DNA of 59,480 nucleotides, taken from assembly GCA_000708835.1 (NCBI GenBank), contig DF237318.1, positions 33,556-93,035 of the forward strand. The letters run 5' to 3'. Both the position numbers and the translations under genes were made by a program. This document shows, piece by piece, positions 12,422 through 56,200 of this stretch. The DNA is from Klebsormidium nitens. Lineage: Eukaryota; Plantae; Klebsormidiophyceae. Numbering within the stretch: the first letter of the stretch is position 1; each line of letters opens with the position of its first letter. The notes beneath the pieces are model-generated. The model was given only the letters and a program-made list of their open reading frames with translations. It had not been told where the DNA came from and searched no databases.

Positions 12422-12446
12422 TTTGGGAAGTTGAAGCAACAGTTTA

Positions 12447-14634: not shown

Positions 14635-17600
14635 ATGGGAGAGGTGCCAGTGACAGAGGTCCAGCACAAGGCGCCACGTGGCAAGCTGCAATGGCGCCAC
14701 CTGTCAGTGGACGCCAAGGAGGCCTTGCTGCGAGGGGGGCGGGTCAGCAACCTGCAGCTGGCCATCTTAATGATGATTCTTCTCTGCGGAGTGGACATCC
14801 TTATGCGGGGAACGCTCCAATGTTCGAGGGGACCAGACGTTTCACAACGTTCTGGGGGCTTGGCCCTTGCTGGGTTTGCTGGGGGGGGAGCGCTCGGGTC
14901 GTCGCGGGTGCGGTCAACCCACATGGCGTGCCCGCTGCATTGCGTAACTAGGGATGGGGAGGGGAGGAATGCGGTGCCCATTCAGCTGCCATGCCAGCCT
15001 GTTGCGTGCACAGAACTAGATATGGGTGGGAAACTAGACGGGAGAAAACTAGAGGGAAAAAAGGTAGAGACGGGAAGTGTATTGGGGGCAAGAGAAGAAG
15101 CAGGGGTCGGGGTCAGAAGAAATGCAGAAGCAGGAGGAATTGGAGGAGCAGGACAAGAACTAGAGCGGGCGGAAAGTAAGGGGGGCAGCTTGTTAGCATC
15201 AGGCAAATTGCCAGAAAGAATGCTTCCCAGGAGAATAGAGGAGCCAAGTCTGTCAGACACTCCGATCTTCTTCCTGGCGACGGATCCAGACCCGTACTCG
15301 ATCGTGTGCATGAAACTGGCCCGCATCTACAGCCCGAAGGCGCCGTTGTATGTAATTACAACGAGGTGAGCTGGCGCCTCATGTGTCAGGCAGCAGCATC
15401 AAGGTGATCAACTAGACGTGTGGAAAACTTTGCGGGACGTTTATGTTTACCTGCTCTGCAGAGCACAACTCGGGCGCTTGGCAGTCACTGAATCCAGGTT
15501 GACACCCTACTCTACAGTCCCTTTCCACTGGAGCGTTTAGAAAGTCCAGAAAGTCCAGAAAGTTTTGTCATAAATTGGCCTTCCCACCTGGGTAATCCAA
15601 CTTTCGAAGAACGGTGGGTGGGGCCCATACGCACTTGTTCAAGTGTATGCATTCGCTTATGGTCCACTTCAAGGTGCTGGGAAACAGAGACCCTGAAGCC
15701 TAAAGCCAAACATTCCCTTTAAATAGAACGTTGCCAGTTAGAAATTGCACCTTACCAGACTCACGAAGTTGCTTTCTGAATATGCTGTTCCGGTCCTCGT
15801 TCCTCTGCTCCTCCCAAATGTGCCTGATCAGATGCATGATTAATACCCGGCAAAAACTGAATGATATGAGACAAATGCAACCTAGATTATCCACTGACTT
15901 CCTAACGTGAGCTGCTTCAATTTGCCCCTCAGGTACGCAGTCGCGCACGCACGGTTCCATGAATTGCTGCACCTGCCAAACGTGCGGTTCAAGATGCTGG
16001 AACACTACGTCGAGGACGGCTCCGACTCAAGCGAATTCTACAAGGACTACATCCACCAGAGCGTGACGCAGGTGCTCGGAACTCTCACTAACCAAACAAT
16101 ACCTCTTAACTCTCACTATTAACTCAAAAATACCTCGTAACTGTCACTAACCGAACAATACCTCTTAACTCTCACTATCCAAACAATACCTCTTAACTCT
16201 CACCAACCAAACAATACCTCTTAAGTCTCACCAAAGAAAAAATACCTCTTCACTCTCACTAATCAAACAATACCTCGTAACTCTCACTAACCAAAGAATC
16301 CTTCTTAACTCTTACTAATCAAACAATACCTCTTGAAGTTCCTCAACCCAGCTCCTGAAAGATGCTTTGAGACTGATCCGGCTATGCCAGTCAGCGTTAA
16401 AGCTGCGGCCTTTTCTACACCCTCTCGCTGCTTCGTCCGAAAGTCGACTTCCAAAAGCTCCTCGAATGAAAAGTCGCTGTTTGTTTTCACAGACTAGAGT
16501 CCGAAGCCTCCGATGAAGCGCTTCCGTTATGCAAGTCGAGAGGGTAACGGGGCATGGACTTGGACTTTTGTTTGTGGAGGAAAGGGAATGAAAGATCGTT
16601 TCTTTCCCCGCAGATCAGGTTTGAGCGGCCGTCCGTTTGTGAAGAAAAGAGAATGGAAGATCGATTCTTTCCCCGCAGATCAAGTTTGAGCGGCTGTGCT
16701 TCTTTCGCTATTTCGTCATCCGGGAAATCTGCCGCGAGGAGGCCATCCAGCGCTTCCTCTACATGGACGGTGACGTGGCGCTCTTCTCTGACGTCAGCAA
16801 GTTCGCCGCGCATGACGTGGACCTGCTCGCGCTGACCACGCACTCGGGCTTCTTCTCGCTCTGGCGGCTGTCGCCGTTTGAAAGATTCTGCGAATACATG
16901 GCGGGCTTTTACAAGCGGGATCGGGAGCTCGTATACGAGGTGAGATCAAGCGTACTTGATTTGATTCGGCAATAGTCTGTGGGTTCTTCCGAGATACGAT
17001 GGGTCTGAAAATTTCCTGCGCATTTGCAGTTAGCATTTGGATCACTCAATGTATAAGACCTGTGAGAAGTCAGCGTAATCGTCTAAGATTACTTGGCTTT
17101 TATCGTTTTGAGTGTCATTGAATAAGCGTTCTCTAACCCGCTTACGTTCAAGAACTCTGCACTCACGTGGCTCGCTTTTGTAGAAAACACCCGTAGCTAG
17201 TCCACAAGCTTAGCGTTTCCCGTTGCCGGACAGTAGGCTCTGAGGTTCCGGGTATTACGAAAGCCATTTCAGGAACGAAGGAGAAGAAGAAGACCATTTG
17301 GAATAGTGCCTTTCGACGCTTGAGCCCACTCAGTCCTGACCGTTGGACCTGAAGGGGTATCGTATCGCCTGAGATGATGATCAAAGCCCCCAATCCTTTC
17401 CCGATGTCTCAGAAAGCTGCAAAGCTGCACTCATGCGCTCGAATCCACGACCTTATTTCGTTACCGGTTCCGCTTCCCTTTCCGTGCAGGACATCAACCG
17501 GTACGGCATGAAGATGAAGGAGACGTCCGTGCAGTTCAGCGACTCATTCACTTGCTTCTTTCGCCATTATTTCAAGAGTCGCAAGTCGCACTCTGACGCT

Positions 17601-19320
17601 CGAACCCACACGCTCATTCCGTTTCCGTCTCCGCTTCCGTTTCCGCGCAGGACATCAACCGGAACGGCATGAAGATGAACGAGACGTTCGTGCAGTTCAG
17701 CGACATGTTCACTTGCTGCTTTCCCCGCCGGTACAGAAGTGCCCTCTTCACGCAGAAATCATCATCCCATTCCTTTTCCGGTTCCGTTTCCGCGCAGGAC
17801 ATCAACCGGAACGGCATGAAGATGAACGAGACGTTCGTGCAGTTCAGCGACATGTTCATGATGTTCTCCTGGTGGCAGCAGCACCAGGCCGACTTCTCCT
17901 GGAAGTTCCTCGTGCACGACTCCAAAAAGTTCCAGGTCAGGCCCTAAACCCTTTTCCTTAACCCTCGTACATTTCTGAGCTTAACCCAGTGGCTAGCAGT
18001 GACCTGTTTTGCTCCTGGTGGCAGCAGCACCGAGCCGACTTCTCCTGGAAGTTCCTCGTGCACGACTCCAAAAAGTTCCAGGTCAGCTTTTTGAAATTAA
18101 CCCCAACCCGTGTGCTTAAACCTCGATTTCCTCTCTGTGTATCCGGTCTTTAGGAAGGACCTCTTCTCCACAGATTTTTCTGTGCACGATCTTTGTGTCG
18201 AGCTCAGCGTTTGCTTCTTGACAAACTTCCCACGACATTCCGTATGCTCAAATTCAGAGGCACTGAAGTGAGAGACGGGTATAGCGGGTGAAATGCTGAT
18301 AATGGAGCGCATTGTATTCTCAAGAATGACAGAGCATTTCGGAGAGATCGACAAAGCTATGATCCCGGGGTTTTCCTCAACTCGTGAGGACATGCTAGGC
18401 TATGGCAATTGTGGGATCTTAAGTGCCTCTCCTCTGCGGTCCTTGCAGGACGGCTTCTTCGAGTATTGGCCCATGATGAACCTGCAGAACATCATCGGGT
18501 GGGACTGCCTCGAAGAGGACTACCGGCAGAAGATGGAGTGGCGGGAAGACGAGCAGGTACGGCCACGTGGTCGCTCGCACTTTTGGACACGTGTCATTCA
18601 CGTCGACAGCTCTGCTACTGTTGCTGGGCAGCGACGGTTTTCAAAATGTTGCTTGTTCGGGATGCGGTTGCCGTGCTCTTCTGCTCTGTCAACTGTTCCG
18701 ACTGCTGATCGAAGGCCAGATTCTCGCAATGGACCTAGGACGTCTGCCTGTCTTGGGCCTCTTCGTTCTTGTAGAGAACTGTAGAAGCTGATTTGCTGTT
18801 CCCTTCCTCTGGTTCTCTGGAAGCCCACGCGCAGTTCGCGTGGATTGTAAGTGGTCGTATAGAACGGTTGATCGGCTCTTGGACGGCTCAGAGTCTGTCT
18901 CTGTGTTCTTTCGTCTTCGTTCGTTTTGAGCGCCGATTCATCAAAGTCAAGAGCATTTCACGGCGCGCATGGCCGTGGCCTCGTAAGAGGATGCGAAAGA
19001 GAACTGTCGGCTAAACCGTTCAAACTCCACATATACGCGACGGAATGCATTGCTAAAGAGTGTAAGGATTCCGGTGTTGAAGCAATATGATGCGTCTTTT
19101 GCAGGGCAAGCCGATGCCGCATTTCAACGGCACCACGTTTCCGGGCCTCCATTTCCAGGGCTTTTACTGTAAGAATCTGTCGCGTTTCATATTGGATCCC
19201 ATCATAGACAAGTGGCTACCGGTCAGAACGCACTCCTCGGATCCGGGCCTGAAGATTGCGTCACCCCTCCAGAGATACGACCTTAACCCCGGGTTACCGC
19301 CCAGTAACGGGCGACGGTAA
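14635..19320 (+). CDS. Putative GT-A-fold glycosyltransferase-like type II membrane protein, family unassigned (6 exons, ~530 aa)
   Basis: Exons 14635..15365, 15933..16071, 16679..16939, 17798..17935, 18449..18556 and 19105..19320 are phase-consistent (1593 nt). The protein has a TM helix (LQLAILMMILLCGVDILM), a low-complexity stem, then YIHQS..KFERLCFFRYF, FLYMDGDV (DxD), FSDM and GLHFQG. The gene model is firm; the function is inferred. Confidence 0.75.
16081..16336 (+). repeat. 28-bp intronic minisatellite, ~9 units, consensus ACTCTCACTAACCAAACAATACCTCTTA
   Basis: Read directly. It starts 9 nt after the donor of exon 2 of the GT-like gene, and the units are head-to-tail without spacers. 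Confidence 0.95.
16585..16700 (+). repeat. Duplicated acceptor plus exon start (GT-like exon 3), period 65 bp
   Basis: GATCG-TTCTTTCCCCGCAG|ATCA(G/A)GTTTGAGCGGC occurs at 16614 (decoy) and 16679 (functional). Confidence 0.85.
17455..18090 (+). repeat. Junction-spanning tandem copies on both sides of GT-like exon 4
   Basis: Acceptor plus GACATCAACCGG..CAGTTCAGCGAC occurs at 17490, 17651 and 17798 (functional). Exon end plus donor (..AAAAAGTTCCAG|GTCAG) occurs at 17935 (functional) and 18081. Confidence 0.93.
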
Positions 19321-20604
19321 AGTACCGAAGCGGAAGTTTTGTTAGTTTGAAGAGTTTGTGACATAAGCCTCGGAGATGTAGGCGGATGTAGGCTCGTATT
19401 CCTGCAGTCTAGCACTTTTAAGAGGGGCAACGGTATGGTATGGCGGGATAGGCCGCCGCTACATCGAGTAGATGTCGAGAAGAAAAATGGTCTCGAACGG
19501 AACGGGCCTTTTACGGACGATTCAGAAACAAAGCGAAAACGATTCTGGGTCACGTGCTATAGCTTTGGTCCTTGCAGAACAAGGAAGTTTCGATGAAAGA
19601 TCGAAGAAACATGTGTAGGTCAGAGCAAGAATCAAGTCAGACCGGCCAAGGGTGGCATATCAATGAAACCTAGCACCTCTACCCATCAGTGTACACGGCA
19701 TACATGCCACCGTCGATATCAGGCTATCTAACTTAATTGCTGAACAAAACGAGCAGTGTCTCTCATGTGCCGGGGCTAGCTAGCTAGGCTAGCTCATGCA
19801 ACCGTTGAACTTATCAGTAACGAACGGAAGAAGTAAGCGCATGCATGATATATACACAAATTTTCCAAGTGGCTATAGCCTAGCTGCTTTTAGTAATGAC
19901 GTCTTATATATGTATTTGAATAACTTGAGAGCTAGTGCCTATGCTCAGCAATGATATGCATGCATATTATACCAGATTGATCGCGAAATGGGCTAGCTCT
20001 CAGTGTGTACTACTACGTGCCTACTAGCCGGGCTTTGCCATGCAAGTTCATTTGCAAAGCTTGTAACTCTTCTGCCGCGGGATCGCGTTATACATGCATG
20101 CGCACGCAGCCGCGGTCGGACCGGCCGCAATTACTAGCTAGTGCATGTATGACGGTCGGGTTCTGATTGGTAACTCAGTGGCATGTTGCGGGGCAGCCAT
20201 GCCGCAGTATATCTTCGTGCATCCTGCCCGTACTTCACTGATCATGTGTTGTTGCGCATAAACATTGAAAAATAGTGCAAGTCCATCGATTGGTAGCGAT
20301 CCGGACATCGGACCCGCGCCCATAGCTGGTATTTCCTGCGCAACGACCGTTTTGGGTCACCCAGCCTCAAGGCCGGGCAGATTGAGAGTTCGAGATAGTG
20401 CATCAAAGGTACGATCAATCGTCCTTTGTGCGGTATCACACTGACACCCGTCAATACTTTTGACTAGGCAGGAGCCTTCAGCGCAGAAGAAGAGCCTCAG
20501 CTGCAATGCCCACCTGTACACTTGCCTCGTTCTGACGTAGCCGCTGTAGCTAAGTTATCGCTCTGTTCTACTTTTGACCTCAGCTAACGCGTGCTCAAGC
20601 TCAG

Positions 20605-23600
20605 CTAGCCCGGCTTCTGGGCGCTCGCTTCGGGCCGGGGGGGCAAAAAGTTCCTAAATCCGCGGTGGACAACCTCCCCCTCGCTGCTCTCATCCTCGTC
20701 CAAATCTCGCCCGGGGGGCTTCACCTTGGGTACTTCCTCTCTCATTGACTCGCTCGCGTCGTCCGGGGCAGCCGCGGCTCGCCTCTCCCGGTGGACCGGC
20801 TCGGTGTCCTCGACATTCCGCTCCGCTTGGTTTCCGCCCAGGGGCTTGAACGCCCGGAACGCACCAAACGCTGACCCCTCTTTGACTTCGGCTTTCAGAA
20901 ACCCCCCCTGGTTTTGCCCTCCCTCCTCTCCACTCCCGGACACGCCTAGGTCCATCTCCGTGCTGCTCGCCGACGGCCGGTGCCGTCCCGCGAGGAGCCC
21001 CGACGCAACCTGGAAAAACGGGAACGCCCCCGGCGGGATCCCCCGGGCCTCGTCCAAAGAATGGAAGGCTCCCGGGGGGATCCCCCGGGCTTCGTCCAGC
21101 GAGGGGGCGTGCCCGGCCTGGGACGGCGCCGACGCGGCCGCGGTCGCGGCGTCGTAAAGCGCGGCCGCCGACGAGGCCGCAGCGTTGTACTCGGGGGGAA
21201 CCCAGATGCTCCCGAGGACCACCACCTGGCCGGGACCGGGGCTCGCACCGCTTGTCGGGATGGGGCTCGGCCGCCGCGTGTGCAACCGGTACTTCTGCAC
21301 GGATATAGATGCGCACTTCAATCAGCCGAGAGCCTCCCAAGGCTTACGGTATCACCTATTTGCGATGCGGGTGCGATTTCTGAGGGGCCGCATTCGCCGG
21401 CGGGCCACTCTAGTCGTTCAGTTTGATTCCCTGCGATGCGCGAATTCGCAGAGATTCAGATACCCCTCCCCTCCGCAGATCAGGTTGGTTCTTATGGAAA
21501 AGTGGCAGCCTCTGCTTTGGTTGGCGGTGCTGTTTCCATCGCCGCTCAGATACCGTCGGCTCCTAACTAGATCTTGCGAGTCGTAAGATCCTATCTGGTT
21601 CCGACTAGAACCTTTCGACTTCTGCCTGTGTGGAACCTGATACTGACATATATTCTTCACCCGGACTTTATCTGGAGTTCGCTCAATCAACGTCAATCAA
21701 AACCCATGATGAGTAAGAAAGCTGACTAAGAAAGCTCCCGGAGGACGCATTAAATTGCTCTACAACTTATGATGGGTGCGCAGCATGTCAGCTGAGATCG
21801 AATTTCTTAGTGGCCCGTTCACAATCCTTAGTCGTCATGCTTTTGATCAACCTGAAATCGAGGAGTATCTCACCTGGAGGTGGCTCTTGACTTCGTCGTT
21901 GGTCAGTCCGTCCACTTTCATGAGCTCCCGGATCTGCTTCGGCGTCGCCACCTGCGACCCCCCCAGCTGGTTCAGCGCGTTCACAAACCGCCGGTGCAGC
22001 TCGGGGCTCCAGCATCGGCGCTGCTTGCGCGACATCGCCCCGGTGCTGCCACGCAAACGAAAGGGGGGGTCAGCAAACTTCCAAGAAAGAGGAGGGGTTG
22101 TTTTCAGGTTTTCGGCTCCGCATGTTTTGAGTCATGATGGAAGGGCTAGTACCGCCGCTGCTTGCACGACATCGCCCCCGTGCTGTCACGCAGAAGAAAG
22201 GGGGGGTCACCAAAATCCGAATGCAAAAAGAGGGGTAACTTCGACTTGGTGATTTGCGCAGTATTTTCATCAAAAATCAAGGGGCTCCAGCACCGCCGCT
22301 GCTTGCGAGACATCGCCCCCGTGCTGCCACGCAAACGAAAGTGGGGGTCAGGAAAAAAAACGAGGAAAGGGGTACTTTTGGATTTGTTTCTGGTGCAGCA
22401 TGTCTGATTGCAGATCAAGGGGTTCCGCACTGCCGCTGCTTACGCAACATCGCCCCCGTGCTGCCATGCGAACGAGCCGGGGGGCAAGTAGATAAACAGT
22501 GGGAAAAGAGAGGTAATTTTGACGTTCCTGGCGCAGCATGTTCGAAGGAGAAATCCAGGAGGCCCAGAACTGTGCCACACAAATGTAAGAGGTTTTTTGT
22601 CGAATCACGCTAAGTTGAGGCAGATCACTTTCAGGGGAAGAGGGGGGAAAGAAGCGGAGTGGGGTGGGTTGGCTGCAGTATGTTGACACCGGGTTTCGGG
22701 TTTTGCTTTGCGTGAGCCCACGAAAGCGACGCACCTCAACGTAAGCCCAACTCAAATGCAAAATTGAGATCTCTCGAAGCGAGGGGTTAGTCAAAGGAGC
22801 GGGAGAAAGGTGGGTGCTTCTCTGCTTTCATCTCACGTCAGCTTCTTATTCATGATCTCGAAGGATAGCAGATGGGTACTACGACATGGCCCGGCGATGT
22901 CTCTGACCAGTCGCAGACTTTGATCTCGCTTCGCTATCATCGCTCAATTGACAGCTCTCAAAATGAATTCTTACACCCCGACCGTCAATCTGAAGGGTCA
23001 ATCAGTGGGGTCAAACCGTAGATCAAGCGTCCACGTCATCCATTCTCTGTCACCAGTGCACCGCACAATTCTTGAACCCCGTGCGTGCTTTGAGGGGTTA
23101 ATCAGGACATAGTGCTTGCACCTGTCTCTCCACACGGATGGCCCTATCTTCACAATTTCAGGAGTGTCCGCCTCACTTAACTTTCTATTGAACTTCACCC
23201 TTTCTGCCGGCTACTGCTTTCGATGAATTGGTTCTATTTTGCAATGCTCAAATAAGAGTCGAGCGGCCAGATTTGCCACAGCGTGCAGTTACGAGTAAGA
23301 ATAAGTGGAGGCGGTCCTGAGAGAAAGCTCCAATTGTATGAATAGTGCGCCGTGAAGGATAGCGCCAAGCGCAGGGGACGGGTGTGGTTAGCTTTCGGGT
23401 TAGGGTGGGTTTGGGTGCGGAGCGCATGAGTACTTTGATTTGTGTTTCAAGTTACTTCTTACCCTTCAGGACGACTTTAGCAGTCGTGTAGCTTAATCCT
23501 TCACAGAATCGAGACTATGTCCCAAAGAGCCTACCTTCCGGTTCCGTCGGTGGCCATGGCGGTTCCCTCCCCGGAGTGCCCGCCTTCGGTGTCTGAGGGG

Positions 23601-26226
23601 CCTGCGGGAGCCGTCTGAGACCTGGACGCAGAGCGCGGGGCGTCAGCCCAAAGGCAATTCAGCCATGGGCCTACATACTCGAGACTGGCAACCTTTGCTG
23701 AGTCTGCGTTCCGCTGAATTCAGATGCTTGCCCTCCTTACCAGGTCCCTATTTGAACGGTTCACGTTCTGCACTCAATCGGACCGGATCGTTGGCGAGGC
23801 AGGCAGGTCTCACGCAGCGTTTCACTAACCGTTCAAGTGACTCTGGTGTCAGTGTTTGCAGGACACGTTCTGGTCACGACGCGAGGTCCTTCTCGAAACA
23901 GGCGGGCTGATGAGTGGTCGTCGCGACTAGAAAAGAGAGGTTTCCTGCTGCCCTTGGCCCAGATAATCACAGCACCCTCGGATTGTAGAAGCAGCAGGTT
24001 GGCAACGTTCAGAGGCGGGCTGCCATCGAGCGCTTACCTTCGAGCCATTCAGGACTCCTGCTAATCGCAAAGCCCGAAGAGTGCTGCGACAAAACACCCC
24101 TGAACCCTCGGACATGAAAAAGGCGAAACCCAAGAACTGGTTGGCAACCATTGAGGAACGCACACGCACCTCCTTTCCTCGAGCACTGACGCTGGACTGC
24201 CGTCGTGGTCTTGTCCCGAGCCGGCGGCGAGGCCACCGGGCGTAAGATGGACGGCGAGGGGATAGGTTATGGCGCGGGGGGACGAGGGCCGGGCGACGTG
24301 CGGGCTGTGCTGCTCCCTGGAAGGACAAGGAAAGTGTTCTGCTTATGAGATGCTGTTACTGACGTTTCAGATAATCTTTTGCTTACGACGTTCACATCAA
24401 GTATGGGTTCTGACCACTCCCCTTGGATTTTGGACTTGGAGAGACTTGAAGTTTACCGTAAATGTTAACGAATCAAAGGGAGTTATGCAGGACGTGAGGC
24501 TGTGCTGCTCTCTTGGGTGAAGCGGAAGCTGTTGCCTTCACCACAAGGAAAGGATGATCGAATGGAGAGCTTAAGCAGCAACGGGGAAATCTGCTCTGTT
24601 GAATAGGGGGACGGTGTAGAAGGGGAATGCCAAACTAGGAACACCAATCAAATTGCTGTTCCGGGAGGGCTTCTTTGGAGTTAGAAATGTGGCAGAAATA
24701 CAGCAAACCTGGGCTTGAATGGGGCTGGTTTGAAATAATTGGATGTAAGCCATGGGCGACCCGTACATAGCTCTGAAGTGAAAAGCATAACCGAAGACCT
24801 GTGCCGTCAGAAATAAAAGCTTCACAAGAATGTAAAACGGGGAACCGTACAGACTCCATGAGATCTCCACGAATTCAGTGGGTCAAAGATAAAACTGCAG
24901 GTGCAGCACGCCACACTTGAAGCGAAGGCAGTAAGATTCAGGAACTTGCGGAGCAGAAACGAGACTTCGGAACATGGGAGGAAAGCAGACAAAAGGCCTT
25001 CACCTCGAGACGGGCGAAAGCAACCCCGGCAAGCAATGCAGGACAAGCGAAGCACAGAAACACACTGACTTATCCACCTTGAAAACGGCAGAAAAGCGCC
25101 CGGCGTGCGAAACAACTGTGGCCCGGCACGCTCCTCCCCGCCATCCCGCAACGGCCGCCCCGGCGCCCTCTCGCCGCGCGGAGGCCCCAACCCCTCCATC
25201 CTCTGCTCCAAAGCTCTCTGCTCCACTCCCGTCTGCTGCGCCGCTCTCACCGAAATAGCCTCCGACAGCCAGGCGGGACTTCCCCGAAATGGGGGGGGAA
25301 ACGGGAGGTGAGCAGGGTGGGGGGGGATGGTGGGGATGGGGCGGTGGGAGTGGTGGGAGCGGTCGCGTGGGCGCTCGGGCTCGCTGACGTCATCCGAGTC
25401 CATGGGCTCGTCATCGGCCTTGAGTTGCGCCTGAGTGGACTGGATCGCTGCAGTTGGGGTGGGAGGACGGGTTATGAAGGTTAAGGCTCTGGTTGTGGAG
25501 AATAAGGCTCGGATTATGTGAAACCACGTGGGCTGATGATTGCGAGCGCAGACTGCCTAAAAGGACAGGCGCACTCACTGGTGGGCTATTGGCGCTGGTA
25601 CTCAATCAAGAGAACACCAAGTCGAAGTTTACTCATCGGTCCCGCTTGAGTCACGGTCGAGGGGAGCTACACTTGTGCCGAGAGCCGGACCTTCAGCCTT
25701 CAACCTTTGACAAAGACTTCCTTGAGCCGTTGCAAAGCAAATGGAAACGCTGGTTGAATGGCATGTGACTGGGGGGTACCGAGGTGGTTTAACGGGGCAC
25801 ATTGATGAAAGTAATCTTGAAGACGTAGACCCTCGCCACCATGGAATTACAATACCACCAAGCTCTGAACACGTTTGATTTAAGTGTTCCGTTTGGGCAG
25901 CTCCTCTAGGCACAACATCGTCTACAAAGCACCACTTGAAGGACCTTGGCAAGCCAGGTTTGCAAGCCAAACCCGTCGCCCACCCGGCAGCCGGCTCCTT
26001 GCCTCTCCCCCATCTACAACTCCCGTGACATTCTGACCTTTTGTAGCCAATTTGCATTTCTGGAGACTGTTCTTTCCATAGTCAGTTGATTTCCCAACCA
26101 CGCACCGTCCGTGAGCAGTTGCATGCACAGCGGCAACTCCCGCTTGAAGGCCTCCACTTTTCGCCGCTCCTCCTCGAGCCCCCGCAGATACTCCTGCAGC
26201 TCCTGCCGGTCTGCATCGTCGCTCAT
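20605..26226 (-). CDS. HHO: GARP/G2-like MYB-related transcription factor of the NIGT1/HRS1/HHO subfamily (6 exons, ~528 aa)
   Basis: Exons complement(26106..26226, 25078..25447, 24170..24316, 23535..23621, 21874..22045, 20605..21294) total 1587 nt. Motifs: N-terminal [26 protein letters not shown] domain [44 protein letters not shown]|KYRLH, and the post-domain [12 protein letters not shown]. The symbol is family-level. Confidence 0.93.
21995..22480 (-). repeat. Tandem copies of the HHO exon 5 acceptor plus the first ~35-55 nt of the GARP exon
   Basis: CAG|CAC(C/G)GGGGCGATGTC.. starts at 22045 (functional), 22182, 22323 and 22460. Periods are 137, 141 and 137 bp. Confidence 0.93.
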
Positions 26227-39978: not shown

Positions 39979-40200
39979 CCTCACATTGTTGATCAGAAGG
40001 CACAGCTCTGACTTTCTTTGGAAGAACTGCCATTCAGCTGCCCAGGGCGGAAAAGGAGAACGCAGCGAAACATGGGACCCACCGTCATGCCGTCACATAT
40101 ATGCACAGAGAAACGGTCGCTTATGGAATTAGCATCGAAGTTTACACGCAGGCCAGGCAGAGAGATAGAGCCCGGGGCGTCAATCGACCGTGGTTCGAAA

Positions 40201-40210
40201 GGCCCACGTG
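40201..40210. promoter_or_regulatory. Overlapping site-II (GGCCCA) and G-box (CACGTG) motif in the ~510-bp divergent ldpA/DUF538 promoter
   Basis: The sequence GGCCCACGTG lies roughly midway between the two divergent ATGs (39978 and 40489). This is a motif match only. Confidence 0.3.
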
Positions 40211-40488
40211 AGATGCAGGCGGTACAGCGTCCCGGGAGGCTCCTTACAGATTCCATTTCGACGACAAAACTCCGTGCCGATTCCCTGGAAAAACCGGCCG
40301 TCAATTCACGTCAATTCTCCCGAGGGCACAGCTTTGAGTTTCGAAGGCGAGGTTCTTGCAAGCTGCAACGGGTGGTGCTTCATTCAAGTCCATCAAATCG
40401 AAGGTGTCAGAAGATAGTGATATTGTGGACCTTGCCTGGGGGGATTTGTAAAGCATCGCCAGTTGATTGTCTTGATCGATTTGACGTG

Positions 40489-47200: not shown

Positions 47201-50200
47201 GACGTGGAAGTACTTAGAAGAAAAGGTTACGTTGCAAACCTGCCAGTTGACCACGATTCACAAAGCTCGCAATCCTAAGCGCCAACGACCAAGCCGCTCA
47301 GATCCTTACCCCAAAATTCAAAAACCAACTTCAAACCCCCAAAACTTTTTCTTACCTGTCGCCGCAGGAGGTGGAAGCAATAGGCGGGCGTGGTAACGTT
47401 GCAGAGCTATCGGTTGACTGCGGAATTACAAGCCTCACAACACTTTGAATAGCAGGTACACTCCATCACCCGGAATCCTATCCTTATTGTTAACCCCGAA
47501 ACGTTGCCTTACCTGGCGCCGCAGGACGTGGAAGTAGTTGGCGGGCGTGGTCACGTTGCAAACCTGCCAGTTGACCTGCTGCAGCTGGCGGCGGAGCGAG
47601 GGGTCCATCTCGGGAATGACGTTCGGGTTGTCGTCACTCATCTGGAGATACCGCTCCAGCCGCGCGCTGCTGTGCTCGGGGCCCTGCCCGTCGTACCTGG
47701 CAGCCGGCGCGAGGATGAGTAAAAGACGAAGAAAGTTGCGAAGTAAAACATGAAGGGTTTAGATAGGGTTTTGTCGTAATGGGACCGATTCTTTGTCAGC
47801 CTCGGGCCCTGCCCGTCGTACCTGGCAGCGGGCGCGAGGATGAGTCAAACGACTAGCGAACGAACATAGCGAACCAGAACATCAAGGGTTACGTCGAGTT
47901 TTGTGGTTATTATGAGCGACTCCCTGTTACGCTCGAGGCCCTGCCTGTCCTACCTGGCAGCGACAATCGAAAAGTCGCAAAACCATAAAGAAGAATTCTG
48001 GGCTAAGTCGATGTGAGGAATTCGGCGACAAGGACATTCACACTTTGTTGTGATCTGGGCGATTGCTCGGCTCGGGGCCGACCCTCGTGTCTTAGCAAGG
48101 GTGGGTTTTGGAATGCTTGTCAGGATTCCAACAGAGAGGATGTATCTACGCAATCAAGATGAACACGAACAGCGTTTTCCGGTGCAATGTTTCAAGACTT
48201 GCATCGACAGTATTCGGTTGCACGACTCCCAGATCTGGCCACGAAGTCGGAAGAGCGCAGCGTTTAATTCTAGATTCATTACATGGTGGTCACACATGGC
48301 AATCACATCACGAAGTGGGAGAAGAAGTGAGCCGAGCATTGCTAAAGCAGAACGACAAAACCTGGGTAAAATCGAGGTTAGAGCCTAACCCGTGGGGCAG
48401 CAGGCAGACGAGCCCTGTCTGGCGCAGCCACTTGGCCTCCCCACTGCTGATGAACTGGTCAAAGATAACCTGCGCGCCGTTTGCAAAGTCCCCGAACTGC
48501 GCCTCCCAGATCACCAGCGAGTTAGGGTTCTCCATGGAGTAACCCAGCTCGTAACCCAGCACGCCGAACTCGGAGAGGCTCGAGTTGGTGACAGTGAAGC
48601 GCTCGGGGTCGCCCTCCTGGGACGGGGTCACGTGGTCCAGCGGGCAGTACTGCCGCCCGTTCTCCTGCGGGTAGCATTCGCTTATTTAACATTTGTTTTT
48701 ATTCTTGTTTCTGTTTTCCTGCAGGTACGAAACTCGAAAGACATTATGAACTCTTCAAAACCCCTCGTTGAGTGCAGTTAGTGAACACCGCTAAGTCCCT
48801 CGTTCTGCGAGGCTTGGACGGAACAGCAAGCAGCACACTGCAGCTGTGGGTTCCCAAGATTGCGGAATTGCCTTTGGACATGATTAAAACACGAAAATAC
48901 AGGTCAAATTTCAAAAAAAGATCTGGGAAGCTTTACCTGGTCGAGCAAAACGATTTCCCTGTGGCGGCAAAAGGAAGAAGAAGGAAACATAGGAAACCGC
49001 ACAGCTTGCGACGCCTTAGAGGGCGGCACTCCTCGTCCAGTTGACAGCCAGAAAGTGTTCTTGGAGACATTTCCATAAGGAGTCCAGTGCGCACTTTGAT
49101 TTAATTATAAACACGATGACTCCACTCTGCAGAGCTCAGCTCGGGAATCCCCAACTCCGGCTGGATGGGTTTGAAACTGCCTTCTGAAAGACCGATACGA
49201 ATCCAAGAGCGTCTATCTGTTGCCAACAGAAGCTGACCGTGACGTTGCCCAGCCGAGTCGTCCCCCAGCCGAACTTGCATCAGTGCCCCGCCTGTATAAC
49301 TTTTTGAGTTCTTAACATCAAAGCCATCTGAAACTCTCTGATGCCAGTGGGTTGCGACCGAAGCTCGGCTTTTCAGAACCTCTACCACGGTGTGGTAATT
49401 CCGAGAAGAGCAGATCGCGTGGAGACCCATTCTATAGTCAGTAGTTCGGTTTCGTAAATTCACAACCAGAAAAGCCATCAGTATCTTGAGAGTTTACTTG
49501 TATGAATGAGACCAATCTCCTGGAACCCTCGCCTGGTTGCGCACCCATCAAACAGTGGAGAGCCGAAAGAAGGTTCTAATCCTCAGAAGGTCTGAAGCTT
49601 TGCAGCCGTGAAAGCCGAAAAAGGACTTCAGACGGTTCAGTGTGATCTAAACAAGGTTTCTTGAACCCCAACCTGGTCGTGCAGCACGGCGTGCCTATGA
49701 CTGAACGTCCCCCGCTCCACGTCTTGCCCGCTCAACCGCACGTGGTTGCCCTCCACGATGAGCGTCCCGAACGCAAGTGCCTCTGCGGTCGCCCAGTCCA
49801 CCCCCTGCAGAACGTAGACCAAATTCAGGACGCTAAGAGATGGCGTGACAGAGTGCCATCGGTTGCTGCGCCGGAACCATCTTCAGGACGCCAATGTATG
49901 TCTGTCTGCTTCGACCTGACCCCTTCCAATTGGGTCGTGATGAAAGAAACGTTTTGTCGAGCGCTTGAAGCCGTATGCTCGTCTGATCATCTCATTGTGT
50001 TCTTGAAAGCGAGGCTTTCCATCCTAAGAGCTCCGATTACTCTTCAAGCTTGCTCTCAATCGGGACCCCCAACTCACGTGCTTATAAGAATGGGCGGACG
50101 TCACAAGTTAACACTCGGCGTCGCTCCACCCAGGGTGACATCAAAACAAACAGAAAGCACTGATAGGTCTTCTGCAAGCCAGAGTGTGAACAGCCTTCCA

Positions 50201-53200
50201 CGTGGCATCTTGAGGATTGCACACGTGGCCAGCACATTGGGTGAGAAAGGATGCAGCCCGCACCTCGCCGGTCTCGATCATCTTCTGGCGCTGCTCGTAC
50301 ACCCTCCGGATGCCCCGGTGGGGGTTGAAGCCCTCGGGGAATGTCGTCACGGCCTGGCCCACCTGCTTCAGGACCTCGGGGTTGACCCCCGTGTTCTTGA
50401 TCTTGGAGATCTGCTCCGGGCCCTTGAAGCCTGGGGAAAACAAGGAGACCAATGCTTACATGACGAACGAAGCTGTAACATTGTGTTCATTATTTTGGAG
50501 GTCTTTGCCAGGCACGTTAAGCCTGGGGTGAAGTTAAACCGACATAAGTTGACCCCCATGTTCTTGATCTTGGAGATCTGCTCCGGGCCCTTGAAACTGG
50601 GGGGAAAAGGAGAGATGAAGAATGCTTAACGAACGAACGAAACTCCGTCATGGCATTCATTTTGGACGTGTACTCCAGGCCCGTTAGCCTGGGGGAAAGT
50701 CAAACCGACATAACTTGACCCCCGTATTCTTGATCTTGACACCTGGGGGAAACAAAGAGACCAATGGTTTGGAAAACGAACGACACCTCACCTGTGTTCA
50801 TATTAATAGAGTTCTGCTCAAGGCCCTTCAAGCCAGGGGGGGAAGTCAGATCAACAAAAAATCAAAAACCAACAGAAGACCCCTGAAACCTGGGGGAAGC
50901 GAAGAGACGAGTGTTTGATTGGACAAGGAAAGGTTCACCTCCGTGTTCTTGATCTTAGAGCTTGGCTCCGGGCCCTGAAGAATTGATTCTTCCGTGTCTA
51001 CAAGTATGTTGTTCGAGCTTCCAGGAAGGGGGCAGCCAAGGTTGCGACAGTAAAGCGGTCTGCCGAAACAAGTCGTTTTCGACAAAGAATGAAATCTTGA
51101 ACTGGTTTCTAGATTGAAGTGGGGAAAGTAGAGAGAACGACCTCGCCTTGAAGGAAGGCCATCAAGCGACAGCTGTAGAAAACAAGAGCAACTTCAAGTT
51201 TTGGAGCAAGACCAGCCAAAAGCTGGGGGTCGGGAGCAAAAACCGTTTGCAAAGCACACTGCACAAACCCCTTGCAACCACTAGTTGCAGAAAAGAGTCA
51301 GAGAAAGTGACTGATCAGTAAGGAAGAAAAGCGGAAGCAGGTCGTTAATTCTGTTCATGCCCACCTGCCCAGCGGAAGCCACGCGCGCATCTTTACTGGC
51401 CAAATTGACTCAAAAGATGACACTTCGTGCGCTGCACATAACAGGCCGTTACAACGACTTTCACCAAGTCCAGTTTATCGTGTTCTCACGCATTTCGTAC
51501 CTGACCAGTAAGATGTGAGCCAGTCGCGCGTCTCGGGCTTGTAGCTCTTGGAGGCCTCGAACTGTTCGTTCAGGATGGCTAGCACGCGGTCCTGCGTTTT
51601 CTTGATCTCCTCGTCCGTCAGCTGTCCGCCGCGCTTCAGCTTCTCTTGGTACAGTTGGAGCGCCGGCGGGTGGCTTTTGATCACCTGGCAAAGGGAGCGA
51701 GAACATCAACAACAGTCTCTTAAGGCTAGATAAGGTATGGAAAAGGGTGAGCGAGCTTTCAAAGTAAGCTGCCCGCCGCTTAGCTCAGCTTCTCTTGGTA
51801 CAGTTGGAGCGCCGGCGGGTGGCTCTTGATCACCTGGCAAAGGGAGCGAAAAGATAAGAACAGGTTTTTGGTCAAAGAGAAGCGAAAAAGCATGAATGAG
51901 TTTCTCTAAGCTGCCCGCCGCGCTTCAGCTTCTCCTGGTGCAGTTGGAGCGCCGGCGGGTGGCTCTTGATCACCTGGCGACGAAAGCGAAAAGATCATGA
52001 ACAGGTTTTTAATGCTCAAAAAGGGGCGAAAAAGCATGAACGAGTTTCTATAAGCTGCCCGCCGCGCTTCAGCTTGTCTTGGTACAGTTGGAGCGCCGGC
52101 GGGTGGCCATCGATCACCTGGCGACGAAAGCGAAAAGATCAAGAAACAGGTTTTGGGAGGTCAAATAAGGCGTGGACAAACATGACGGAGTTCTTTGATA
52201 AGCTGCCCGCCTCGCTTCAGCTTCTCCTGGTACAGATGCAGCGCGTGCGGATGCCTTTTGACGACCTGGCAAAGGGAGCGAGATTATCAAAAACACTTTT
52301 TGAAAGGTCGATGTGGGGTGGCAAAGCAATTTCTGAAGGTAGATATGGGGTTGGAAAAGCATAAGTGGGTTCTTTGATAAGCTGCCCGTCGAGCTTCAGC
52401 TTTTCTGATGCAGCTGCTTTGTTGATAAGATGCCCGTCGAGCTTCAGCTTTTCTGATACAGCTGCAGCGCCCCGGTGGGCTGTTGATTCCCAGTGGCAAG
52501 TGCACCATAAAAGTTGGGAAGAAATCCGGGATGCCTTTCTCAACGTTATGAACTCGTGTTGGGATCGAAAAGTACGGAACTTCCAGCACGTTCAAAGGAA
52601 CGAGCTTCGTGACGACCAGAAACCACCAAAAAGCTTCCACAATACCTATTTATAGCTTCTTCTGCAATTCCTGAAACTCAAAACAGCCCCAGACGACAAA
52701 CCCACGGCACACAAGCTGAGTGCAACTCATGGTGCAACTTCAGAGTCCACAAGTTCGCTTGCTTCAAACGCAAGCCCACAGTCCGTAACCATGCAAATCA
52801 AAGATCCTACAAACAAAGCAGAATGCAGAACCGATTCCGGACCCGGACCAATGTTCGGACGCTGCGACTCACGCTGTACATCTTGGGCTGCGTGAAGGAC
52901 GGCTCGTCCAGCTCGTTGTGCCCAAAGCGCCGGTAGCACACGATGTCAATGACGACGTCATCGCCCCACTTTTGGCGCCACTCCACCGCCAGCTCAAACA
53001 CGTGCACCACCGCCTCCACGTCATCGCCGTTGACGTGGAAGATGGGGGCGTTCAGCGCTTTTGCGACGTCCGTGCAGTAGGGGGACGAGCGGCTATGCTT
53101 GGGGTCGGTCGTAAACGCAACCTAGGAATCGACGAAAACCTTGTGTAAGTTAGTAGGACATAGGATCGGGGGATTGAGCACCTTGGCCTGAGAGACGGAT

Positions 53201-56200
53201 TCAAGTTCCATTGGATTACTTAAGGAATGGTTGCATCCAGTACTTTGCAGATCTGGAGATTGACCACCACCTGGAGAGCACCCTCGCCTGGAGTTTAAAA
53301 AGAATCCTTAGACAGAGTAATCTACCCCTATCAGAGGAACCGAGGACGCTGCCAAACAATGATTGACGAACAATCTCCTGCGAACGGCCTCACAGAAGGC
53401 AGATAGACACCTGTGGGCACGAGATGTTGGATGCGCGGACCCCTGTTGCAGCGCATTACTTTGGTCACCCCTACAATCACCACGCGCACTGATCTGGTTG
53501 TTTACCACCATGTGAATCATTCCCGCCGACGTGTGGTTAAGCGAAACTAATTGTCTTGCAAACCACTTTCTATGACCAGAAAACGTTTGACTTACCTGCT
53601 TGATGACCACCACATAATCATCCCCCACGTCGTGTAGCTGGGCAGATCGCACAATCCAAACGTCTCCTTGATCAGCAGCCTCTGTAATCAGAACCAAAGC
53701 GACTAACCTGGTTGTTGACCACCATATAGATCATCCCCCCGGTCGTGTAGTTCGGCAGAACCCTAAAATGTAACGCCACGTATAAGCAGAGTCAAACCCA
53801 CTAACCTGGTTGTTGACCACCACGTGGATCATCCCCCCCGTCGTGTAGTTGGGCAGATCGCTCAGATGGAACGTCTCGTAAACCACGCCCTGCCCCGCGA
53901 AGCTGCCGTCCCCGTGCATCAGAACGCCCATGTTGCGCTTGCGCTTGGTGTCTCCGGTGTAGTACTGCTTCGCGCGGGTCTTGCCCATGACAACCGGGTC
54001 GACGGCTTCCAGGTGGCTGGGGTTGGCAACTAGAGAGAGGTGGATGTGCTTGCCGCCGAGGGTGGGCCGGTCGTAGGACGTGCCCAGGTGGTACTTGACG
54101 TCACCAGAGCCGGTGTAGAGGTCCTGGGGGAAGAAAGGGGGTCACGGATACATGTGTGCACTCGGAGAAGACGATGAAGATGCAATCGAAAGAGTGACAG
54201 GCGCGCGGCTCAGCCTGCTGCTAGGAATAATAACACTTTGTGCCAGTGGCGCTGGACTCCGCTAAACGAGGTCCAGGCGTCCTGGAAAAGGACAGAAAAA
54301 GTATATTGGACAGAGGCATCCAAAAGAAACCTGAAATCCAAAAAGGGCAAGCGAAGAATGCGGGCAAAGTTGCTCCAGAGAACTGCGGGTGACATAAGAC
54401 CTCACATGAAGGCCAATGACAAGAAGGAAAAACGACCGGGTCATTCTCAAAAGCCAGCTGGGTGAACAGGGGCACCAAAGTTGGAGAATGCTAAATTGAC
54501 ACGTTGCAGTCAAGAACTCATTCTCTCAACAAGCAGATTTTTGTTGGTGAGCCCGCCACTAGCTCGATGGTCGCTGCTTAAATGTCCGGCTTTCGAAACG
54601 TTCTGGAAAGACATTTTGAGGCCTTGGAGGCACTTGGAAGCTTGCACGTTTGATCTCAGTAAGTTTACGAAAACCTGCCTTTTGGATGCGTCGCTGTCCC
54701 TGCGGCCACCTGAGGCGCTCACATCCCTGACCATGTCTGGCGGGGACCATTCATGAAACAGACACAAGCTTAGAGAGACGACGAGAAACAAGTCGTTTTC
54801 GGAACAAAGTGGGAAACCCCGGAAGAATCCAGTCAATACAGTATGTGGCACCGGCTCGGAGCCCCACTGACTCCCTCGGCAAAACAACTCCTTTAGCTAA
54901 GCACTCTTTACCGAACACTTGACGTTCGCTTCAAGGAAGCAAACAGACACTCACCCCTTCGTCCGCAATGGGCTTGAGCCCCCCGCTGAACTCGCTGAAG
55001 ATCTGCGCGAGCGGCTTGCGCACCACGTTGCCCAGGACGTTCAACCGGCCCCTGTGCGGCATCCCAATCACGATGCTCTCCACCCCTAGATCCGCCGCCC
55101 GGTCAATCATTTCCTTCAGCCCGGGAATTAGGGTTTCGCAGCCCTCGAGCCCGAAGCGCTTGGCGGCGGTCCACTTTTGCGACAGGAAGGCTTCGAAGAG
55201 GTGGCCCCACATGAGTCGGTCCAGAATGACGGCCTTGCGGTCTTTGGAGTAGGGTGTCATGTGGGGTGCCTCGATCTTCTCGCGCAGCCAATTGCAGCGG
55301 TCGCGGTCGGGTATGTGCATGTACTCGTAGCCAACGGTGCCGCTATACGTTTGCCTGACGGGAAGGTGTGCGAAGCTTTAGAACACAATATTCTCAACGA
55401 TCATTTTGCAGAGGGTCTTACTATGATACACAAGAGGATCTTATTATGAGACACACAACGGTCGTCTACATGAACTTGTAGCCGATGGGGGCCGCAGTGG
55501 GTGTGCCTGACAGGGGGAAAGGCCTCTGCAGCAATGATTTTCTGCACTTTCGCAAATCTATGTCGAGCTAGGAGTGCGGGAAATAAAATCGATGGGCAGG
55601 TACTCGTAGTGGCCGGTTCCACAGATTTGCTTGACCAAAACCCAGTGCAGAGCTTCGGCTTTCCAATATCGGGATAGTTATTTGGAGAGAAGAGCGCAGA
55701 ACGAAATACATCGTAACCCAAGTTGCTCGAGTAGGAGCTAAGAAACCAAGGTTTCCCTATCTTACTCTTCGAAAGACCTGAGAAGAAGCGCAAAGGTTAC
55801 CATCTGCTCATCCTCGGGAACTCGTAGCCAAACATGTGGGCAAGTAACCTCGTCTAGGAGAGAAGCCGAGAGGAGCTCGGAACCGAGAGAAGCATTCGTC
55901 TAAATCCTACGACAGCCTTCCAAAAGCCACGCATCGATTGACGGATTCTGAGCCTTGCGAGTGGATGACACCAGCGTAGGCTTCCTCGTGTACCAGGAAG
56001 ACACCCAGTTCTGCAAGAACCACATAACGGCGTCTCCTGAACCCGTTCTCTTATGCAACAAACACGGTCTCTCTGAAGGATCTAAAGCAAAAATGCGCCC
56101 ACTTACTCAAGCCTGGTCAGGATGGCCCTCAGCGTCTGTCGGGGCCTGTCCTCCGACAGGAAGCCCTTCATCCGCCACGTCCCCAGAAAGAACTCCCGGT

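Follow-up and report, generated by a model that had tools for sequence, protein, structure and literature searches.

Tandem copies of splice junctions occupy flanking introns of several genes in a 59-kb window of Klebsormidium nitens

Results

The window (i.e., the whole stretch of DNA that was analysed, 59,480 nt of K. nitens contig DF237318.1) holds five unrelated genes with tandem copies of exon ends in their introns: the GT-like gene A, the HHO/GARP-like gene B, ldpA, a DUF538 gene and OGDH. At the places listed in a preliminary description of this DNA, the copies were recovered in three ways, i.e., by TRF, by blastn self-comparison and by a sliding local-alignment scan (with the reversed sequence as control, of which 0 of 2967 tiles reached a score of 19). 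About one third of the checked exon–intron borders carry one to six diverged head-to-tail copies of ~100–170 bases each in the neighbouring intron. The unit comprises exon sequence, splice site and intron flank of the working junction, as judged from RNA contigs, homology and an orthologue. These direct copies adjoin their source, with TRF and blastn offsets equal to the unit length and all matches within 1500 bp.

Exon borders of genes A and B were derived from RNA contigs, with loose ends placed separately, and those of OGDH from tblastn with homologues, splice-site reading and an ag–exon–gt arrangement exactly conserved in the locus of a relative. Exon ends of 80 nt were aligned to the adjacent intron at 38 junctions, and the same ends were aligned to non-adjacent introns as controls (n = 684, maximum score 18). 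Twelve of the 38 junctions scored above all 684 controls, and the sliding scan added the OGDH acceptor 55354 (score 20), yielding 13 statistically clear junctions next to three with weak copies. All 13 strong arrays begin at the working junction, the later units being splice-site copies (hereafter decoys). This within-window alignment, a check that the preliminary description had proposed, agrees with its count of about 16 junctions in five genes, down to the split per gene: nine in OGDH, three in gene A, one plus one borderline in gene B, one in ldpA and one borderline in the DUF538 gene. The sample is small, comprising one window with three genes (A, B and OGDH) annotated in full.

Three arrays lie on the forward strand in gene A. 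At the acceptor of exon 16676–16939, whose start was placed from an RNA contig loose end, two 65-bp units span 16570–16697 (TRF period 65, 90%; blastn 89%; exon-end score 20 vs. the control maximum of 18), the upstream one being a decoy acceptor at ~16609–16634 with its AG kept. The acceptor of exon 17798–17935 (array 17422–17858; TRF, blastn and RNA) is preceded by two decoy acceptors with exon-head copies at 17651–17713 and 17490–17552 (periods 147 and 161; AG in both), and RNA uses the true acceptor (joint 16937>17796). Here, the exon head is identical to the nearest decoy at 61/61 positions, next to diverged intron parts (alignment A2). At the donor of the same exon (17935; array 17866–18086; blastn, score 64), the exon tail and its GT (17866–17940) are re-copied at 18012–18086 (97%, offset 146, decoy GT kept), and the true donor is used in RNA from four runs (joint 17932>18446).

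On the reverse strand, the acceptor of gene B exon 21874–22045 (array 21995–22570; TRF, blastn and RNA) is preceded by three decoy acceptors at 22143–22184, 22281–22325 and 22409–22462 (periods 137–141, all with AG); RNA contigs join the exon border at 22045 to the next exon at ~23535, and unspliced RNA contigs of low depth agree with the decoy region at every position (e.g., 22316–22476 and 22372–22549). A probable second acceptor of gene B near 24316 (24295–24533), whose exon border was set from sequence context rather than RNA, has a weak copy at 24491–24533 (offset 196) and is borderline, with a score of 18.5 vs. the control maximum of 18. In ldpA, also on the reverse strand, acceptor 35897 of exon ~35796–35897 (array 35854–36083; blastn E = 1e-5; Pfam LdpA_C on the exon) has a 40-nt exon-head copy at 36044–36083 (87.5%, offset 190) that lost its AG. 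The putative forward-strand donor at ~40740 of the DUF538 gene (40729–40903; Pfam DUF538 match on ORF 40018–40758) has a weak copy at 40877–40903 (offset 148, GT kept) and is likewise borderline (score 17.5).

The nine OGDH junctions, all on the reverse strand, comprise four donors (45546, 46192, 47513 and 53806) and five acceptors (46407, 47696, 50430, 51684 and 55354). The exon 13 donor (45546; array 45173–45579; blastn; exon-end score 24) has decoy donors at 45445–45461 and 45301–45334 (offsets 101 and 144), both with GT. The exon 12 donor (46192; 45810–46233; TRF period 152) has decoys at 46035–46075 and 45883–45924 (periods 157 and 152) in mosaic units, the exon tail of the far decoy being identical to the exon at 42/42 positions and the working unit being closest to unit 2 over its first 70 columns and to unit 1 over its last 45 (alignment A1). 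A single decoy at ~46472–46523 (offset 116, AG kept, 11-nt gap) accompanies the exon 12 acceptor (46407; 46356–46523; score 23). The exon 11 donor (47513; 47054–47577; blastn) has decoys at 47356–47421, 47189–47252 and 47054–47114 (periods 157, 167 and 134), with GT only in the first, and tblastn picked up the decoy translations. The exon 11 acceptor (47696; 47674–47962; score 19) survives exon masking and has decoys at 47801–47821 and 47915–47953 (periods 125 and 132; AG kept).

The OGDH exon 8 acceptor (50430; 50380–50981; main TRF period 167) has four to five decoys (50548–50597, 50715–50745, 50791–50833, 50932–50981 and a weak one at 50483–50522). At the exon 7 acceptor (51684; 51617–52499; TRF period 144, 4.7 copies), four full decoy acceptors and two fragments (periods 140–149) show identities to the exon of 96, 94, 92, 85, 81 and 80% with growing distance. 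The exon 5 donor (53806; 53253–53885; blastn, with tblastn matches to decoys) has decoys at 53708–53788, 53596–53666 and 53494–53538 and a possible fourth at 53253–53295 (periods 98–112), two of which have GT. The exon 4 acceptor (55354; 55304–55511; score 20 vs. the control maximum of 18) has one decoy at 55459–55511 (offset 155, AG kept). As a comparison, OGDH intron 1 holds a repeat that touches no junction (56928–57086, reverse strand; 2 × 81 bp, 91%; distance to the donor 298 nt, to the acceptor 112 nt); among clear tandem duplications with units of at least 60 bp, it stands alone in this respect.

The first periods of the 16 arrays (65, 98, 101, 116, 125, 137, 146, 147, 148, 149, 155, 157, 157, 167, 190 and 196 bp) have a median of 147 bp and a mean of 141 bp (range 65–196), with 11 of the 16 at 116–167 bp, and thereby match the periods previously counted by hand. 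Two further impressions from that count also held: most copies keep GT or AG (roughly 23 of 31 decoys), and similarity often falls with distance, a fair wording given that in seven of nine arrays with several copies, the nearest decoy exceeds the farthest in similarity (one-sided sign test, P = 0.09). The dinucleotide retention is about what neutral decay at 85–90% identity predicts. Mismatches between decoy and exon amount to 9.7% at the first, 9.8% at the second and 18.7% at the third codon position, and the decoys carry 114 non-synonymous changes and four stops. Since changes are about equal at the first two codon positions and stops are present, the decoys are unconstrained; they are relics decaying neutrally. 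Arrays of alternative or mutually exclusive exons were rejected as a candidate, since the copies are exon ends of 17–80 nt with a single splice site, contain four stops and show no alternative joints in the RNA contigs of genes A and B.

No sequence common to different arrays emerged: in the blastn self-comparison, direct matches at E ≤ 0.2 were confined to offsets of up to 1500 bp, and the opposite strand gave nothing beyond a few palindromes and a single 46-nt match, in line with the earlier statement that the repeats share no sequence between genes. The same result led us to reject an introner or transposon family.

Within the three annotated genes, 12–13 tandem repeats with units of at least 60 bp straddle a working junction and one is purely intronic. 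Junction-spanning repeats (12 of 13 vs. 29% expected at random) are thus in ~3-fold excess (P about 3e-6 to 1e-5), and masking of every base derived from exons left seven of the 12 junction arrays detectable vs. one purely intronic repeat (P ~1e-3). The link to junctions proposed in the preliminary description is thereby supported, and equal frequency of repeats off junctions, which it had named as contrary evidence, is not what these genes display. For several matches of the masked scan, which adjoin the junction directly, an origin as conversion tracts is possible.

The OGDH locus of the relative has exon borders identical to those found here, and none of its 18 junctions carries junction copies (scores 7.5–15). 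The introns at the exon 5 donor, exon 7 acceptor and exon 8 acceptor measure 419, 585 and 219 nt in the relative vs. 684, 1188 and 1070 nt here, and the decoy spans, summed from coordinates, account for ~64% of the excess. Given that the orthologous introns can no longer be aligned between the two species and that 38% of third codon positions differ, the arrays are younger than the split. The locus without copies and with shorter introns in the relative indicates that the arrays represent lineage-specific intron growth; they make up ~30% of intron sequence across the three annotated genes. An interspecies comparison of orthologous introns had been suggested beforehand, and the anticipated intron lengthening was borne out by it for OGDH, whereas the accompanying idea of a source of new exons found no evidence: RNA contigs join the expected exons with no extras, OGDH borders equal those of the relative, and only intron length differs. 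With copies at 0/18 junctions of the relative, the process also varies within the group.

At four junctions of genes A and B, only true sites are joined in RNA contigs from four runs in four studies, and none of the seven decoys there is used in these assembled contigs, which drop rare isoforms. In the assembled contigs of these two genes, decoys are passed over, as the preliminary description had expected of the spliceosome.

Discussion

We consider it probable that the arrays arose by lineage-specific local tandem duplications at the DNA level, with units mostly of 100–170 bp that each straddled a working splice junction, followed by exchange, conversion and decay. After such a duplication, normal mRNA would come only from the copy that still adjoins the remainder of the exon, and the other copy would become an intronic decoy splice site with an attached exon-end fragment. 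Arrays would grow and reshuffle through unequal exchange between units. Short-tract gene conversion would keep the exon-derived patches, and roughly 10–30 nt beside the splice site, like the selected exon, and outside the converted patches the decoys would decay neutrally. The net result would be longer introns, with main transcripts splicing past the decoys. That copies are always laid into the adjacent intron, as observed from the outset, holds as an observation and loses its value as a clue to mechanism: it follows from selection, since only the exon-contiguous copy can give normal mRNA and all others are intronic by definition. The exon-derived parts look much younger than the intron-derived parts, with near-identical patches inside diverged units, which together with the mosaic units suggests that gene conversion may act among the tandem copies.

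No published description of junction copies at this scale was found in the literature. In the minisatellite of the F7 IVS7 type, the first of the 37-bp units holds the working donor, later identical pseudo-sites are silent, and copy number is polymorphic between individuals (VNTR; PMC1557585). The arrays described here likewise have a boundary-spanning first unit, an authentic site contiguous with the exon and silent intronic splice-site copies (seven decoys at four junctions of genes A and B being unused in contigs). In contrast to that single locus with 37-bp identical units, 13–16 junctions within 59 kb are involved here, at donors and acceptors, with diverged units of ~100–170 bp. Internal tandem duplication across intron–exon structure is treated in the Rogers model, the survey of Gao and Lynch (2009), both as cited in Ma et al. 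(2016), and the potato RdRp case (PMC4974935), and resembles the present arrays in the DNA-level tandem copying of part of an intron with part of an exon and in splice signals inherited from the parent junction. However, those cases concern the creation of introns or exons, whereas here the transcript is unchanged and an existing intron lengthened; the account given there includes neither arrays of many copies nor a narrow unit size.

A significant excess of intronic tandem repeats near intron–exon junctions has been reported, above all for Chlamydomonas and Volvox (Zhao et al. 2014, PMC3887541), but those are mainly short motifs inside introns (e.g., GT/AC) from a survey that does not cover Klebsormidium, and units of ~150 bp containing the junction and exon end are not described there. 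Introner elements and transposon-derived introns (PMC9860276) are also a lineage-specific source of intron growth, but form dispersed families with sequence common to loci, whereas each of the present arrays derives from the junction of its own gene and has no sequence in common with the others.

The junction bias may be mutational. It is rather unlikely that duplications of ~150 bp arise uniformly and that those at junctions merely stay recognisable for longer, one copy being under purifying selection and repeatedly converting adjacent copies, whereas duplicates that lie wholly within introns soon fade. Consistent with such an effect of survival or detection, similarity is far higher in exon-derived parts than on the intron sides (0.55–0.61 vs. 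a baseline of 0.50 beyond 20–40 nt from the junction), five of the 12 arrays are lost once exon-derived bases are masked, and mosaic units point to exchange between copies. However, random placement favours intronic positions ~2.4:1, and yet seven junction arrays were found from intron-derived sequence alone vs. one intronic repeat. Moreover, whole-unit alignments of 70–81% over 160–560 nt are easily detected, so that equally old arrays within introns should show, and no purely intronic array with a unit above 100 bp was seen. The junction excess may nonetheless be inflated, as conversion from the constrained exon could keep junction arrays detectable longer than intronic ones.

As to what sets the unit size of the proposed duplications, chromatin-phased repair or slippage at exon-positioned nucleosomes could duplicate the DNA of one nucleosome at junctions, as the preliminary description proposed. 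The median first period of 147 bp, with most arrays (11/16) within 116–167 bp, the shorter units of non-junction tandem repeats (6, 28, 42, 44 and 81 bp) and a GC content ~15 points higher in exons than at intron ends are compatible with this; an architecture of high exon and low intron-end GC goes with exon-positioned nucleosomes in other organisms (PMC3638135). Nevertheless, we find the idea doubtful, since its argument is a coincidence of unit size within a wide spread (65–196 bp), a junction-straddling unit differs from an exon-centred nucleosome, and array-bearing and array-free junctions are alike in GC step and exon length.

That the decoys are a selected device for regulated unproductive splicing or splice-site competition is very improbable. 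About three quarters of them keep AG or GT and their exon-derived patches remain very similar to the working exon, but this retention equals the neutral expectation, codon positions 1 and 2 change equally and include stops, the orthologous introns of the relative lack decoys, no examined RNA contig joins one (genes A and B, four junctions), and housekeeping and unrelated genes carry them alike. Judged from sequence, neutral decay argues against a maintained regulatory role. We give hardly any credence to an artefact of assembly or to the insertion of a mobile element or introner family close to junctions: nothing but the repetitive look of the arrays favours either, while the copies are mutually diverged (70–97%), unspliced RNA contigs of independent studies match decoy regions without difference, and the arrays share no sequence on either strand, each unit stemming from its own gene's exon and intron.

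Beyond these loci, we tentatively raise the possibility that Klebsormidium has a junction-linked mutational process that repeatedly duplicates about one nucleosome length across splice sites and is a main driver of intron growth in the lineage. Its cause could lie in chromatin-phased repair, or in damage or stalled forks linked to transcription or splicing. If this were true, the process would supply thousands of natural decoy splice sites in which to study how true sites are chosen.

Exon maps of the array-bearing genes

The window is eukaryotic and intron-rich, with a GC content of ~63% at exon ends and ~48% at intron ends, and its gene set (i.e., a GARP/HHO-type factor, DUF538, ldpA, GT47 and OGDH) fits that of a streptophyte alga. 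An Rfam search of the window gave no match. The exon borders of gene A (GT-like) and gene B (HHO/GARP-like) were taken from RNA contigs (four runs of four studies) over 16.5–22.5 kb, which placed the exons of gene A at 16676–16939, 17798–17935, 18449–18556 and 19105 onward (+ strand; a preceding exon ends at ~16071), and those of gene B at 20274–21294 and 21874–22045 (– strand; the next exon starts at ~23535). The OGDH map (– strand) was built by tblastn with full-length homologues, after which the splice sites were read and compared with the orthologue of a relative on metagenome contig L001. The exons of both loci were 80–90% identical, and each of the 10 shared exons was bounded by ag and gt at the exact inferred positions. 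The exon bearing the ldpA array was confirmed by a Pfam LdpA_C match.

Several repeats of other make-up were also observed. A 28-bp minisatellite (~9 copies, 82%) at 16080–16334 (+) starts 8 nt past the gene A donor that follows the exon ending at ~16071, and is of another kind than the junction arrays, since it lacks exon sequence. The large coding exon of gene B holds a 42-bp (14-codon) in-frame tandem repeat at 21021–21098 (–), which is not a junction copy. Elsewhere, an imperfect palindrome of 335 bp (12445–12779; 67% self-complementary, E = 7e-23) adjoins a weak 125-bp direct repeat (12319/12444), a 44-bp tandem repeat is present in two copies (86%) at 29735–29822, and a (GAGCAA)x9.5 microsatellite lies at 8571–8627.

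Tandem copies of exon ends lie in the adjacent introns

Tandem Repeats Finder, a blastn comparison of the window with itself and a sliding local-alignment scan with reversed sequence as control (0 of 2967 control tiles reached a score of 19) agreed on one set of local direct repeats. All 49 same-strand blastn matches at E ≤ 0.2 in the window were within 1500 bp of each other, with none farther apart, and the opposite strand yielded a few palindromes only. The repeats are therefore local duplications rather than a dispersed family, in agreement with the earlier claim that no repeat family is shared between genes.

The self-alignment of exon ends proposed in the preliminary description was carried out for this window by aligning 80 nt from either end of each exon with the adjacent intron, with the same ends against non-adjacent introns as 684 controls. 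Twelve of the 38 junctions scored above the control maximum of 18, and the OGDH acceptor at 55354 was added by the sliding scan (score 20). The final tally comprised nine arrays in OGDH, three in gene A, one clear and one borderline array in gene B, one in ldpA (blastn E = 1e-5) and a borderline one in DUF538, so that the gene split reported earlier (9/3/2/1/1 for OGDH, GT-like, HHO, ldpA and DUF538) was recovered, two borderline cases (gene B and DUF538) included. The junction arrays are a real, statistically supported structural feature, and are best classed as boundary-spanning tandem duplications.

The clear arrays involve six donors and seven acceptors, and each copy combines the splice site with 17–80 nt of exon end and 35–117 nt of intron, with a median first period of 147 bp per array (range 65–196). 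Around three quarters of the decoys (i.e., the extra splice-site copies) keep their AG or GT, as had been claimed, a proportion close to that predicted for neutral decay at 85–90% identity per site. The described fall of similarity with distance likewise held, in that 7 of 9 multi-copy arrays had their most distant decoy less similar to the working copy than their nearest one; the array of OGDH exon 7, for example, shows identities of 96, 94, 92, 85, 81 and 80%. At about one third of the checked junctions, spare sites look intact, have a polypyrimidine tract of their own as well as 20–80 nt of genuine exon sequence, and are situated 100–170 nt from the real site.

Beyond the range covered by the preliminary description, a probable extra junction copy was seen at 6596–6745 (–), where the source is an exon tail with donor GTGAGG at ~6722, downstream of the GT47/exostosin exon; the copy is positioned 106 nt deeper in the intron, has kept its GT and scored 19.5 (vs. 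the control maximum of 18).

Three intron-only RNA contigs of low depth (18143–18303, 22316–22476 and 22372–22549), probably derived from unspliced pre-mRNA, match the assembly exactly, and two of them overlie gene B decoy units and thus independently confirm decoy sequence. Decoy exon ends also appeared as extra weak protein matches in tblastn searches with OGDH homologues (53455–53785 and 47186–47445, –), and false exons are to be expected from them in gene predictors and protein-to-genome aligners.

Duplications are concentrated at exon–intron junctions

As a null expectation, units of the observed lengths were placed randomly within the 18.7 kb for which exon borders were firmly mapped (i.e., genes A, B and OGDH). 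Such units fell wholly within introns in 60%, crossed one junction in 24% and fell wholly within exons in 15% of placements, corresponding to an expected junction-straddling share of 29% among gene-viable outcomes. Observed were 12 junction arrays (13 with the later addition) against a single purely intronic tandem duplication (56928–57086, 2 × 81 bp; P ~ 3e-6). Across the whole window, moreover, all placeable repeats with a unit of >100 bp were located on junctions, except for a borderline intronic one at 22966–23105.

Part of this enrichment could stem from survival bias, in that arrays at junctions may be easier to see because one of their copies is under selection. When every exon and every exon-derived decoy segment was masked and the window rescanned, so that detection relied on the intron-derived part of each unit only, 7 of the 12 junction arrays on the mask list were nevertheless recovered, against the same single intronic array (P ~ 1e-3). 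Survival bias is accordingly a rather unlikely contributor, but still a live partial explanation, since several of the matches that survived masking lie directly at the junction and could represent conversion tracts. The junction focus put forward in the preliminary description was thus supported for the annotated genes of this one window, before and after exon masking.

Array units are mosaics of similar and diverged parts

The exon-derived part of the decoys, together with 8–27 nt beside the splice site, resembles the working copy far more than does the remainder of the unit, a contrast that is absent from the preliminary description. In gene A, the nearest decoy and the working exon share all 61 exon-head bases, and identity in the intron parts of these units is ~0.62 (vs. 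a random baseline of 0.44). For OGDH exon 12, the far decoy is identical over 42/42 exon-tail bases and 66/69 over the patch, with whole units being ~73% identical. Pooling of the junction-anchored arrays gave identities of 0.76–0.92 on the exon side, and of 0.65–0.78 in the first 20 nt and 0.55–0.61 past 40 nt on the intron side (baseline 0.50). Stricter alignment scoring with measured baselines was adopted here, column identity under cheap gaps being 0.71 for unrelated sequence.

Selection acting on the working copy alone would reduce divergence by no more than half, and for the intron parts an identity of ~80% would be expected from a neutral divergence of ~0.10 per lineage (taken from codon positions 1 and 2). 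Furthermore, the working unit of OGDH exon 12 is itself a mosaic, with 70 initial columns that are nearest to the far decoy and 45 final columns nearest to the near one. From the similarity of the exon patches and these mosaic units, we infer that array units may have undergone unequal exchange, and that short-tract gene conversion may have carried sequence from the selected exon into the decoys.

Decoys are passed over in assembled transcripts at four junctions

Mismatches between decoy and working exon amounted to 9.7%, 9.8% and 18.7% at codon positions 1, 2 and 3, respectively (n = 483, 482 and 482), with 114 non-synonymous and 70 synonymous changes and 4 stop codons among the decoys. Such a pattern is expected from freely drifting decoys and a working exon in which most changes are silent. 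That copies are always intronic follows from selection, as a normal message can be produced only by the copy that adjoins the rest of the exon.

At the four junctions of genes A and B covered by RNA contigs, the true sites alone were joined and seven decoys were passed over. The earlier proposal that the spliceosome must ignore the decoys is supported to this extent, but such contigs hide rare isoforms and could miss low-level mis-splicing, and this view of RNA is confined to genes A and B. A maintained regulatory role of the decoys is unproven, neither their decay pattern nor the RNA contigs at the four junctions providing a pointer to such a device, and the functional importance of the junction arrays is low.

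Arrays represent lineage-specific intron growth

The OGDH locus of a close relative (L001:1–6266, from ENA metagenome assembly ERZ26273096) provided a usable outgroup for dating; two further loci (L002 and L003) were dropped as comparators, as they belong to distant organisms with a nearly intron-less OGDH. None of the 18 junctions of the relative's nine orthologous introns had a junction copy (scores of 7.5–15, i.e., at control level). These introns measure 419, 292, 475, 424, 419, 585, 219, 456 and 728 nt, compared to 568, 418, 752, 831, 684, 1188, 1070, 459 and 1008 nt, in the same order, for those of the window, which upholds the suggestion that the copies lengthen introns. Summed from their coordinates, the OGDH decoy spans (~1900 nt) amount to ~64% of the excess intron length over the relative, and decoy arrays constitute ~30% of all intron sequence across the three annotated genes.

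Otherwise, no alignment is possible between the orthologous OGDH introns, and the two species differ at 38% of third codon positions, whereas copies within arrays are 70–97% identical, indicating that the arrays arose after the split. The junction arrays are thus lineage-specific intron growth.

Origin and relation to known systems

The data show local duplication at the DNA level that is recurrent at junctions, of both donor and acceptor type, with units of ~100–170 bp. Candidate mechanisms, which we leave unranked, are the repair of staggered nicks and fork stalling where the polymerase pauses close to splice sites. The earlier reading of unit size in terms of the nucleosome fits the median period of 147 bp and is unproven; GC content, GC step and exon length did not differ between junctions with and without arrays. 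An RNA-templated origin from spliced mRNA was rejected, as the copied patches include 8–27 nt of intron beyond the splice site.

Among single loci, the nearest precedent is the minisatellite in intron 7 of human F7, whose first unit spans the exon boundary and whose pseudo-donor sites are silent (PMC1557585). It is accepted that new introns can arise by tandem duplication of intron–exon structure (PMC4974935), and in two green algae tandem repeats, mostly of short motifs, are in excess near intron ends (PMC3887541). In contrast to the arrays described here, none of these involves many junctions per gene with multi-copy, junction-built units of ~150 bp, and no description of junction-straddling arrays of that size was found in the literature searched; neither introns nor repeats are mentioned in the main text of the Klebsormidium genome paper.

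How introns gain length and how the correct splice site is chosen among look-alikes are both open questions, and the junction arrays are of real interest for both. The spare sites outside the assembled transcripts constitute a natural experiment on splice-site choice. Should the junction bias prove mutational, a particular type of structural mutation would thereby be tied to splicing or chromatin. Finally, since about two thirds of the extra OGDH intron length comes from arrays, junction-straddling tandem duplication may be a quantitatively important way for introns to expand that has been overlooked so far.
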